From contig MU626347.1 of the NCBI GenBank assembly GCA_025603075.1, positions 1-64,000 of the forward strand: DNA of 64,000 nucleotides. Reading direction: 5' to 3'. The translations under genes and the position numbers were made by a program. This DNA comes from Neoconidiobolus thromboides FSU 785 (lineage: Eukaryota; Fungi; Entomophthoromycota). Below the pieces are notes generated by a model. It did not search any database. It saw only the letters and a program-made list of their open reading frames with translations, and was not told where the DNA came from. Positions 1,785 through 29,322 of the stretch are shown one piece after another. Numbering within the stretch: position 1 is the stretch's first letter; each line of letters starts with the position of its first letter.

Positions 1785-3588
1785 TTAATTTTTTTTAGCC
1801 AAATCAATACTTGTACAACAAGAAATAAACTTTGGGGTGGCCCTTTTCACATCCAAAATACTAGATAGCAACTTAGCTACTCTTAACAACGTCACATCCT
1901 TTTCTGCTGTAGTATACAAACTCATCCCAAACGGGATCTTTTCCTTATTAACATCCAACGGAATTGTAATAATTGGATAACCAGCCACAGCAGCAGGAGA
2001 AAAAGCACCTAAATTAAAATCAGATGGGACTAATAATACATCTAATTTATTTTCTAGTAAAATAGTATCAATGGCATCTTTAGCTGCTTTTACATTTTCT
2101 TGTTTAGCTTGAATATAATTCGGATCATTTAAATTGCTTGTAGTTTCCGCTTGTAATAATAAACCTTGTTTATAAAGATTTAGTTCAGTGGAATTGTTTT
2201 TATTGTTATATTCTATAATTTTGCTTAAGTTTAAAGACTCTCCAGTTACTGAATTGGATAAGTACTCATTTATATAATGTTTAAATTCATAACTTATCAT
2301 TGTAAATTCTATATTGAAAAACTATTAGTCACACTGTTGACTATAATAATAATACTATAACCTACCTTTAATTGGATCAATTTTAGAAGCATCAATAGTT
2401 AAATTATCAACTATCTTTAATTGCTTGTCCCCCTTTAATTTATTGATTGTAGTATTTAATGTAGTAATTTGATCACGAATGGCTTCACTATCAAAATAAG
2501 GGTTTCTTAAAATACCGATAGTAAATTCACCTTCCTAACAATAAATTAAAAATTAATACATAAAGCCATTATTAATTCATATTTATTTATTACCTTAGTA
2601 TCAGATGTACCATTATCAATTAGCTTTGAAATTTGTTCATTATCCTTTTCAAACATAACTGAAGATACAGTAATTAAATCCTCCATATTTCTAGTAATAG
2701 GACCAGGCTAAGAAAGAGGAAAATTAAATGTTAACTCAAGGATAAAAGTTCAATAATCGAGTCCTTACCGAATCCTGAGTAGGTGATAAAGGAATAATAC
2801 CCTTAGTGGACACTCTACCAACAGTAGGCTTAAATCCAAAGGTAGCAGCTAAGGAGGCGGGGCAAATTAAAGAACCATCAGTTTCAGTACCAATACTAAT
2901 AATAGCTAAATTGCTGGCGATACCAACAGCGGGTCCAGAGCTACTACCAGAAGCAGTAGCACTTAAAACATATGCATTACGGGTTTGTCCACCTCGACCA
3001 CTCCAGCCAGAGACATCGGTAAAATCACGGAAACTAAAGTACCTAGGTTAGTTTTGATTCTTTGATAAATTGAAATTGACTTCAAAAAACTCACCCAGCA
3101 AATTCAGATAGGTTGGCTTTAGCCAAAATGATAGCACCAGCTTGTCGTAATTTCTTAACCAACTTTGCTTCATCTTTAGGTCTCGTTGCTAATAAAACAT
3201 TGGAACCAGCAGTTGTATTCATACCATTAACCGCTATATTATCTTTAATTAAAATTGGTATCCCTAATAATGGAAATTTATTAAGATCAAACGATTTAAT
3301 ATCTTTTGCTTCTTGAATAGCGGATGGATTGGTTTCTATAATAGCATTTAAATATGGATTTAAAATTGAAATTCTTTGTAAATAACATTCAACTAATTGG
3401 GAAGGAGAAAGTTTATTGGTTTGATACAGATTATGAGCTTTCCTGATGGTAAGTTCATAAATGTCTTGTCCATGGCATAAACGAGTGTTGATGTCGAGTT
3501 GGGAAACATCCGTCTGGGTTGAGTTAGTCTGAGCAGTGAGCGAAGAGCTCAATAAAAGCAAAAAATACAAAGATAAAGCTTTTAACAT
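1785..3588 (-). CDS. Secreted amidase-signature family protein (Pam-like), copy B, multi-exon
   Basis: Paralog of copy A: signal peptide, GIPILIKDNI, SGSSSGP, GTETDGSL, GFKPTVG, QDS|PGPITRN (intron 2708-2768), C-terminal PAAVAGYPIITIP. Confidence 0.92.
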
Positions 3589-26716: not shown

Positions 26717-27549
26717 TGAAGGATAGTTATTCGTGTTTATGGTATGAAATTTGATCATTTTATTGGTTATTTAGGTCGCACTTTGATTGGATTAAAGTGG
26801 TTATTTAAACATAATTGGTAAATTCCATTCAATCGTTTAATTGGACATTAGTTATTATAACTACTTTAGATATCTGCTACTTTATTTTTGAAAACAAAAT
26901 TAATAGGATGGCAAAAAAAGAAATATGATCAGAACAAATGATTAGAGAGTAAAAATCATAACAGCCTTAAAAAATAATTAAAATAGCATAATTAACTAGA
27001 GTGTAAAGGATCGAACATGTAAACAGAGCTTCTATAGCTATGTCATATGCTTCTGTCGGATACATAAGAATACTTAAAGGTCTAATTTAGCCCAGGTTTA
27101 ATAAAGACATCAATTTCTCTGAATAGTCTTTTTAATTTATAAGATATACTTTTATGATACTGAATTAGTAATTAATATAAAAATAGTGTCACAATGTTTA
27201 AATTTCTTACAGAGTATAAAGATCTATATTGTTTATGGCTCAAGACTAGTAATTGGTAGTGTGTTTTTGCTATTTTCTATATTTTTCAAAGGTAGCTTAT
27301 TGAGCTATAATATTTACTTCTAAAACTTTCTAGCTCTAAAGTAAAATTAAAACATTTTAATGAAAAGCGTTACTTTGGTATGTAGTAATACACAAGCTTT
27401 ATTATATTAAGTTTCTATCAATTCTTTTAAGCCATACCTCTAATGATAATTTTTGTTAAAAGTTTAATACAGGTGTGTAAACTAAAATAAAACTACAAAA
27501 ACAAATTCAAAAATTATTAAGTTTATTAAATGGAATGCAGCAATTAAAA

Positions 27550-27963
27550 TCAAGAATCGTAGTCATTATAATCATCATAGTCGTTGTAGTTATCATAGTC
27601 ATCGTGATCTTTGTAGTCGTTATCATAATCATTATCACTATAGTCATCATAGTCTTTGTATTTATGCTTGCGCTTCTTATTACATTTCCCTCCTCTACGA
27701 CTACATCCGTCAACAATGACCGTATTTACAATATCAATATTAGTGCCGCCAGAAGATGGTGGAGGTGGCGGTGGTGGCGGGAAAAAGCTAAGGGCTCTAG
27801 TGTCGACTGGATTTTGAGCTACTGGCTGGGTAGCTTCTTTAGGCTGATCTAGACTCAAATCACCAACCAAGGGTTTGGTTAGTTCAGTTAATGGGCTAGT
27901 TTCGCCAGCAGGGAAAGCGGTTATTAGGTTTACAGTAATTGCTAACAAAAAGAATTTGTTCAT
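27550..27963 (-). CDS. Small secreted Pro-rich, Asp/Tyr-repeat protein (137 aa)
   Basis: Signal-like N-terminus, P8 run, TNIDIVNTVIVDG, then DYD/DNDY repeats. Confidence 0.8.
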   Translation of the reverse strand: MNKFFLLAITVNLITAFPAGETSPLTELTKPLVGDLSLDQPKEATQPVAQNPVDTRALSFFPPPPPPPPSSGGTNIDIVNTVIVDGCSRRGGKCNKKRKHKYKDYDDYSDNDYDNDYKDHDDYDNYNDYDDYNDYDS

Positions 27964-28237
27964 TTTAATTATTAATTATGGAAATTATATTAATTCTCTA
28001 TGTAGTTTATATACTTTACTAATTTAGTGTCTATTTTTTAGTTGATATTAAATTATGCCGTTGTGAAAATCTTAAACTTTGAATTTAATATTTATCAACG
28101 CTAATTTAACTTTTAGTCCAAATAAAAATGATCAAATTTTAAAAATAAACTAACGTATAAATAAATAATTCAATTAATCAACATATATAAATATAAACCT
28201 AAAATATAGTTGCATCAAAAATTAATATTACATCAAA

Positions 28238-28651
28238 ATGATTATTCCTAAACTATTAATTAATTTAATCTATCTAATTTTAATAAGTAATACATCGAGT
28301 TCCTTAATACCACTCATTAAAACCACCAATCTAATAACACAAGTATTAACTAACAACAAGCCTCTTTCTTCTATACCTAATGACTTAAATAATAACAAAG
28401 AGCTCTTAATTCCGTTAAAAAAGTTTACAAAATTGAACAAAAATGAACCAATAATACCTTTAAGTAAAATATTAAAATTAAATAATAACAATAACTATTA
28501 TCGAGATTATTATAGTAATCAAAACCAAAATATTCGTATCAATAATTATATTTATGTCCAACATTACTGCCAACGCTATGATTGTTACGAAGATAATGAA
28601 TATTATTATGTTCCAGAGTATGATAGTGAGTATTATGATTATAATAAATAA
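28238..28651 (+). CDS. Small secreted Asn/Tyr-rich protein (137 aa)
   Basis: Signal-like N-terminus, QNIRINNYIYVQH, Tyr/acidic C-terminus. Confidence 0.65.
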   Translation: MIIPKLLINLIYLILISNTSSSLIPLIKTTNLITQVLTNNKPLSSIPNDLNNNKELLIPLKKFTKLNKNEPIIPLSKILKLNNNNNYYRDYYSNQNQNIRINNYIYVQHYCQRYDCYEDNEYYYVPEYDSEYYDYNK

Positions 28652-28860
28652 ATAAATAAATAAATTTCCTAATTAATGTGACTTATAATTATTTGCTTTT
28701 TCACTTCAAATTACTGATTGTAATTTATATCAATACTATATTAACGATTATTAAAATGTATTATCGTTTTTAAAAAATTAGACCTTTTCAAAAATAAACA
28801 ACCTTAAATCATTATGTCTTCATTTATTAAAAAGTTATATTAAATAATTAAATGTTAGTC

Positions 28861-29322
28861 CTATTCCTCAATCTCTGCAATCTCCATATCCTGCTGTGCA
28901 TTCAGCCCTGGATTACCCTGCTGCATTGAAATGGGATTAGGGTTCATTGTTTGAGTAGGTTGTGGTTGTTGGTTATCATTTAGTACAATGGGTGGAAAAA
29001 CAGGTGGAGGAGGTTGAGGATCACTAGGATCATAAGGGTAAGTATGAGAGTTATATGGATCAAAAGGGTTATATGGGTTATATGGGTTATAAGGGTGTTT
29101 ATCATCGTCATCGTTACCATAACCACTCACCCTTACATCATTTCTTATACGTATATTATTGGGTTGTGGTCTTGGTGGTGGTGGTGGTGGTGGTCTTATA
29201 AAAGCATTACTACCAACTGCATTATTATCAGCTATTAACTGAGCTACCAGTTTTCCAGGTTTGGAGGCATCCAAAGGGATACTGGAAACTAGTGGTAATA
29301 ATAGAAGGGAATATAATTTCAT
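28861..29322 (-). CDS. Small secreted Pro-rich protein with PYN repeats (153 aa)
   Basis: MKLYSLLLLPLVSS signal, P7 run, NNIRIRNDVRVSG, (PYN)n repeats. Confidence 0.8.
   Translation of the reverse strand: MKLYSLLLLPLVSSIPLDASKPGKLVAQLIADNNAVGSNAFIRPPPPPPPRPQPNNIRIRNDVRVSGYGNDDDDKHPYNPYNPYNPFDPYNSHTYPYDPSDPQPPPPVFPPIVLNDNQQPQPTQTMNPNPISMQQGNPGLNAQQDMEIAEIEE

Follow-up and report, generated by a model that had tools for sequence, protein, structure and literature searches.

What are three neighbouring genes of the fungus Neoconidiobolus thromboides FSU 785 whose small products have one ten-residue motif in common, and what might that motif do? The genes lie within the first 64,000 nucleotides of contig MU626347.1 (GCA_025603075.1), hereafter the window, a stretch of about 25% GC in a eukaryotic assembly of 24.6 Mb and 799 contigs. 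Gene A (27550-27963, minus strand, 137 amino acids (aa)), gene B (28238-28651, plus strand, 137 aa) and gene C (28861-29322, minus strand, 153 aa) are complete ATG-to-stop open reading frames (ORFs), located where a first-pass annotation of this DNA had placed them and coding in the frames that it had named. From their sequences it is highly probable that the trio forms a genuine family of secreted orphan proteins without detectable relatives. That the three work by beta-pairing of the motif and assembly outside the cell is our preferred but tentative reading.

The motif has the consensus N-I-x-I-x-N-x-[VI]-x-V and occurs once per protein, as NIDIVNTVIV in A (residues 75-84; 27712-27741, minus strand), NIRINNYIYV in B (residues 98-107; 28529-28558, plus strand) and NIRIRNDVRV in C (residues 56-65; 29128-29157, minus strand). 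It is the best ungapped three-way 10-mer block in the trio, with five identical columns and a sixth that is V or I. Five identical columns were not reached in any of 300 shuffles that preserved composition, which bears out the first-pass claim that the same alternating motif is present in all three, and the chance of a match given each protein's own composition ranges from 2e-6 to 9e-5. The codons differ between the genes (in the order A, B, C: Ile2, ATT, ATT, ATA; Ile4, ATT, ATC, ATA; Val10, GTT, GTC, GTG); because they vary while the residues stay, the motif is kept at the protein level and not as a DNA element. The conserved positions are 1, 2, 4, 6, 8 and 10, in a pattern symmetric about Asn6. 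In an extended strand, Ile2, Ile4, Asn6, Val/Ile8 and Val10 would share one face, with the variable residues opposite, and a lone strand with a conserved face in a disordered chain would be expected where a segment gains its order on pairing. An alternative geometry would be a strand-turn-strand arch with Asn6 at its apex.

Back-translated into a DNA pattern and searched against the whole genome, the motif matched 37 sites, compared with 32 for a reversed control, which is chance level. Thirty of the 37 sites were translated, and among these only the copies in A, B and C lie in a long ORF with a signal peptide; the others fall in short frames, in stop-containing frames or in a dispersed repeat. 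Of the remaining seven sites, four appear to belong to a repeat family interrupted by an in-frame stop. Among the 30 translated sites, the motif thus singles out the trio. Also among the pattern matches is a dispersed repeat with a nearly identical 29-nucleotide (nt) stretch (contig and position: C18:138512, C59:108557, C77:8534, C78:91387, C367:11819, C502:1758 and C753:357), which is probably a miniature inverted-repeat transposable element or another small mobile element.

All three ORFs behave as coding sequence. A codon log-odds score trained on three bona fide genes of the window gave +0.40, +0.26 and +0.50 bits per codon for A, B and C in their own frames, the other five frames being negative. 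At the local stop-codon rate, about 0.085 per codon, ORFs of such length are expected 0.01-0.08 times per 64 kb, and one of gene B's length about 0.06 times. By these measures, A, B and C are real, intronless genes. A and B are arranged head-to-head with 274 bp between them, and B and C tail-to-tail with 209 bp between them. The A/B intergenic region (27964-28237, no strand; 17% GC) contains TATA-like boxes pointing toward both genes and is probably a bidirectional promoter. By eye, each of the three genes has an adenine at position -3 relative to its ATG, with a TATA-like box within about 35-105 nt upstream, and alignment of the upstream regions revealed no common element except AT-richness and these boxes. 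Entries identical letter for letter to A (P0002) and C (P0001) are present in a public protein collection. Gene B (23% GC) has no entry, not even itself, in either the word search or the representative library; because it is missing from both public protein collections, though coding by score, it appears to be an unannotated gene. Two plus-strand ORFs lie opposite A (27535-27852) and C (29014-29238); with Ile/Val-rich, Trp-rich translations and negative coding scores, they arise as side products of the repeated Asp/Tyr and Pro codons on the other strand.

The first-pass annotation had regarded the three proteins as otherwise unrelated, and for A and C this does not hold. Composition-adjusted pairwise BLASTP found no match among A, B and C. 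In HMMER comparisons, residues 28-117 of A run collinear with residues 7-93 of C, an alignment of about 90 residues that includes the linker, the proline run, the motif, a Gly and the first Tyr positions. The best-domain scores of this pair were 11.8 and 24.0 bits, compared with shuffle maxima of 4.8 and 10.0 (0 of 300 shuffles). Without the proline runs the signal was matched by 4 of 300 and 0 of 300 shuffles; without both the proline runs and the motif it was marginal, reached by 16 of 300 and 7 of 300. In a HMMER search of the fungus's own genome, the C query found A at E=1.6e-3. By this alignment, A and C are paralogues, collinear yet long diverged. What links gene B to this pair is only the motif, the common order of modules, its size, its place between the two and, as in A, a pair of Cys directly after the motif.

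We found no relatives beyond the trio, in agreement with the first-pass annotation, which had not recognised the family. A profile of A, B and C returned no fourth member from the fungus's own genome, and Pfam gave no family match for any of them. A word-indexed search of 5.8 billion clusters returned A and C as themselves and nothing for B; likewise, a profile search recovered only A and C themselves from 1.84 billion cluster representatives. No relative was present in the JGI metagenome contigs, the PDB sequence profile search gave chance-level matches only (best E 0.37), and ESM Atlas gave feature scores no higher than chance level (0.76 at most) and structural template modelling (TM) scores of at most 0.33. 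Orphan here means that no relative was found among called proteins: the genomes of related fungi lay outside the six-frame search, and small genes such as B can escape protein sets. Among fungi, clusters of orphan genes for small, secreted, low-complexity proteins are a common finding.

The three products have one order of modules: a signal peptide, a Pro-Leu linker, a stiff or low-complexity spacer, one motif and an acidic Tyr-rich tail. In A, a signal peptide (about residues 1-16) is followed by a PL-containing linker, eight prolines (27757-27780, minus strand), the motif, a basic Cys-x6-Cys loop and an Asp/Tyr-rich tail. B has a signal peptide (about residues 1-22), three I-P-L-x-K-type units, an Asn run, the motif, a Cys-x4-Cys pair and a Tyr/Asp/Glu tail. 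C, which has no Cys, consists of a signal peptide (about residues 1-14), a linker, seven prolines (29173-29193, minus strand), the motif, a PYN-repeat Tyr/Pro tail and a Gln/Pro/Asn-rich acidic C-terminus. The spacer before the motif is thus the Pro7-8 run in A and C and an Asn/Tyr run in B. Both proline runs lie five residues N-terminal of the motif, and Tyr-rich repeats follow it in all three proteins, as had been described. Tyr makes up 5-14% of the mature sequences. The tails of A and C contain 9-nt periodic repeats that have already diverged, and no other internal repeats were detected; the mature N-terminal half of B contains three units of the type hydrophobic-I-P-L-x-K-x-x-K-L-N. Basic sites are di- and tetra-basic in A, beside the two-Cys loop, and KK in B, and are not conserved.

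The signal peptides assigned at first pass are consistent with an N-terminal hydrophobic peak in each protein (Kyte-Doolittle (KD) 9-residue mean 2.3-2.7) and, by eye, with a plausible cleavage site that has small residues at -3 and -1. Past residue 25 there is no membrane-like segment (maximum 19-residue KD value at most 0.51) and no C-terminal anchor signal, and the distance from the predicted cleavage site to the motif is 42-76 residues. Most simply, A, B and C would be soluble secreted proteins.

As monomers, the three are predicted to be disordered. AlphaFold2, run on A with a three-row alignment and on B alone, gave predicted local distance difference test (pLDDT) values of 49.6 for A, in which the Pro8 run was the sole stretch above 70, and 37.8 for B. 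ESM Atlas models had a pLDDT of 0.47-0.48 on a 0-1 scale and a predicted TM score (pTM) of 0.11, and pTM over all models ranged from 0.11 to 0.19. We suggest that the motif may act as a beta-pairing zipper that joins these otherwise floppy proteins outside the cell, to each other or to a partner; the partner could be copies of the same protein, paralogues or another protein. The assembled product might be a matrix, wall-surface or mucilage material, in which the Tyr-rich tails would be exposed to oxidation by the fungus's many apparently secreted tyrosinases. We regard this reading as possible, though somewhat less likely than not, and an amyloid or glue function of the trio as a plausible conjecture.

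The enzymes that this proposal calls for are abundant in the genome. The tyrosinase domain PF00264 gave 34 matches, of which at least 28 are near full length or over the cut-off (for example, contig C42, 87127-87681, minus strand, and five copies on contig C16 at about 3031, 52611, 59655, 63659 and 115706; loci L037-L044), and all eight tyrosinase genes sampled have a signal-peptide-like N-terminus, so that many of these enzymes are probably extracellular. Large tyrosinase counts have been published for Conidiobolus, with 55 in C. coronatus and 24 in C. obscurus (PMC12387763). Since enzymes able to turn protein Tyr into 3,4-dihydroxyphenylalanine (DOPA) or its quinone are plentiful, cross-linking of the tails of A, B and C would be feasible.

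Several results weigh against beta-pairing as the common function of the trio. The AlphaFold2 monomer models have no confident strand at the motif. On the a3v scale, a simple measure of aggregation, the motif scored 1.00 in A (the top window), 0.71 in B and at most -0.05 in C; the strongest window of A outside the signal peptide is the C-terminal half of the motif, and only in A is the motif a hot spot. The motif of C is highly charged, with three Arg and one Asp. In Als5, amyloid is lost on V326N substitution, which puts an Asn into the hydrophobic core (PMC3050909); a central Asn is therefore not automatically pro-amyloid. Each protein has one copy of the motif, unlike known functional amyloids, which are built from repeats. 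Finally, gene B has no whole-sequence similarity to A or C in HMMER comparisons with shuffles, and no orthologues of any of the three were found among the called proteins searched.

A more specific version of the proposal has A, B and C assembling together as a mixed cross-beta spine, with tails that the expanded, apparently secreted tyrosinases would oxidise. The outcome would be the entomophthoralean adhesive, a tanned amyloid that glues or coats conidia or hyphae. At motif position 3, A has Asp whereas B and C have Arg, a difference that would favour mixed over pure stacking. In such a spine, Asp3 of A would lie opposite Arg3 of B and C, and the proline runs would space the chains. We consider this version unlikely.

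Other explanations account for part of the same evidence. The trio could be fast-evolving host-interaction effectors of an insect pathogen, the motif serving as a docking, uptake or target-binding site and the proline runs and acidic Tyr tails binding host proteins instead of forming part of the fungus. Orphan status, small size, a signal peptide, clustering and extreme divergence outside the motif would all fit effector families, the proline runs and P/Q-rich tails look like segments that bind host proteins or serve as transglutaminase substrates, and the nearest Atlas feature matches (kappa-casein and a parasite secreted antigen) scored at chance level. However, the genome has three members where motif-defined families usually have tens to hundreds, and the neighbours in the window are housekeeping genes and not a variable compartment; we judge this explanation unlikely, if the most serious of the rivals. 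The trio could also be young or decaying genes of little or no function, in which the motif would be a leftover of common descent in low-complexity ORFs that drift under an AT-rich mutational bias. No relatives were found, all three proteins are predicted to be disordered, and gene B has a near-intergenic composition (23% GC) and is missing from public protein sets. Such genes would not be expected to retain three intact frames where stops occur at about 0.085 per codon, nor to keep five to six motif positions with differing codons while the rest has diverged beyond recognition by BLAST; the signal peptide, the module order, the adenine at -3 and the TATA-like boxes are likewise kept in all three. 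Loss or lack of function is thus a rather improbable account of the trio.

The motif might instead belong to cleaved precursors, as a recognition, sorting or folding element of a pro-region, with the basic Cys-x6-Cys loop of A as an antimicrobial-type payload that the acidic tail neutralises. An anionic pro-piece joined to a cationic peptide is a common precursor layout; A has its di- and tetra-basic sites beside the two-Cys loop, followed by a strongly acidic tail, and in B a two-Cys loop lies directly C-terminal of the motif. By contrast, C has neither Cys nor a dibasic site after the motif. Since neither the basic sites nor the Cys pair is conserved, processing cannot be the family-wide function of the motif, and we give this explanation little credence. 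Least of all do we expect Tyr-sulfated secreted peptide signals of the plant phytosulfokine (PSK)/PSY type, which seem to us very nearly negligible as an explanation. The tails contain Asp-flanked Tyr, and B has the string YIYVQ, which we take to be close to the PSK pentapeptide; the YIY string is confined to B, with other residues at that place in A and C. A genome search with Sulfotransfer_3 (PF13469), of the tyrosylprotein sulfotransferase (TPST) type, gave no match, the plant-type TPST not being covered by that search. A PSK-like reading of YIYVQ was rejected on these two grounds, its presence in one member only and the lack of a TPST-type match.

Elsewhere in the window, genes identified by Pfam are ordinary eukaryotic ones, encoding TSC2/tuberin, an inositol polyphosphate kinase and an ENA-type P-ATPase. 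Among three minus-strand ORFs at 341-865, 1785-2300 and 3091-3588, two with signal-peptide-like starts match the N-terminal part of Amidase (PF01425), and the third, which lies between them, has a weak, sub-cut-off match to the C-terminal end of the same family. These ORFs probably represent exons belonging to a tandem pair of genes for secreted amidases.

The molecular make-up of the conidial or hyphal coat and glue is not known in entomophthoralean insect pathogens, and a review of Entomophthora describes the nature of the adhesive as undetermined, with hydrophobins merely guessed (PMC8588673). If the trio is expressed on spores or hyphae, three genes and one ten-residue motif would offer a compact, testable model of a surface or adhesive material other than hydrophobins. 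Should the trio prove silent, the locus would be one further cluster of orphan small secreted proteins.

Of the amyloid and adhesive systems compared here, the trio belongs to none and at most works like them. The yeast cell-surface adhesins (Candida Als5/Als1 and Flo) have a short Ile/Val/Thr-rich beta-aggregation segment in a low-complexity extracellular protein, and this segment mediates protein-protein clustering outside the cell (PMC9306254, PMC3050909). The half-motif I-V-N-T-V-I-V of A resembles the Als/Flo amyloid cores; the motifs of B and C are not strongly hydrophobic. In build the adhesins differ: they are large proteins that carry an Ig-like ligand domain, Thr-rich repeats, a glycosylated stalk and a glycosylphosphatidylinositol anchor (PMC9306254), none of which the trio possesses, and there is no homology. 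An Als/Flo-type adhesin was set aside: A, B and C have no Pfam domain and no hydrophobic C-terminus, and are 137-153 aa long.

Further candidate classes were also rejected. Two Cys in A and B and none in C do not fit the eight-Cys pattern of hydrophobins, and the proteins have no hydrophobin match in Pfam; a genome search with hydrophobin PF01185 gave no match either, a weak negative in that bacterial control genomes were also negative and PF06766 was not part of the genome search. Repeat-built amyloids (curli CsgA, chaplins and HET-s-type solenoids) have two or more strand-turn-strand repeats per protein with Asn/Gln ladders, compared with one motif copy per protein here. Amyloid signalling motifs (HET-s, PP, sigma and RHIM-like), which sit at a terminus of cytosolic proteins and are paired with a neighbouring NLR gene, were discounted given the signal-peptide-like N-termini of A, B and C and the lack of a nucleotide-binding leucine-rich-repeat (NLR) protein among the Pfam-identified genes of the window. 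An RxLR-like effector superfamily does not agree with three gene-sized ORFs genome-wide and a motif 42-76 residues past the predicted cleavage site.

Cross-linked and coat-forming proteins offer further comparisons. Mussel foot proteins and extensins, which phenol oxidases cure, have in common with the trio secretion, disorder, clustered Tyr and polyproline stretches, and the matching oxidases are abundant in this genome. Mussel foot proteins, however, are basic and Gly/Lys-rich, whereas the tails of the trio are acidic; extensins have many Ser-Pro(3-5) repeats with hydroxyproline glycosylation, whereas A and C have a single proline run; and both groups lack the conserved beta motif of the trio. 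Assignment as an extensin was rejected on the one Pro7-8 run in A and C, the lack of any in B, and the presence of Tyr-x-Tyr in B only. The repellents of Ustilago maydis (Rep1) are small, secreted, non-hydrophobin peptides, which build amphipathic amyloid fibrils on the aerial hyphae (PMC3133707). Kex2 releases 11 related peptides from the single Rep1 precursor, whereas the trio comprises three genes with a single motif each and no Kex2-bounded repeats, and the two are not homologous; a repellent-type precursor was rejected, with no repeated peptide units and basic sites only in A, together with KK in B. For the coat or glue proposed at first pass, Rep1 represents the nearest functional analogue.

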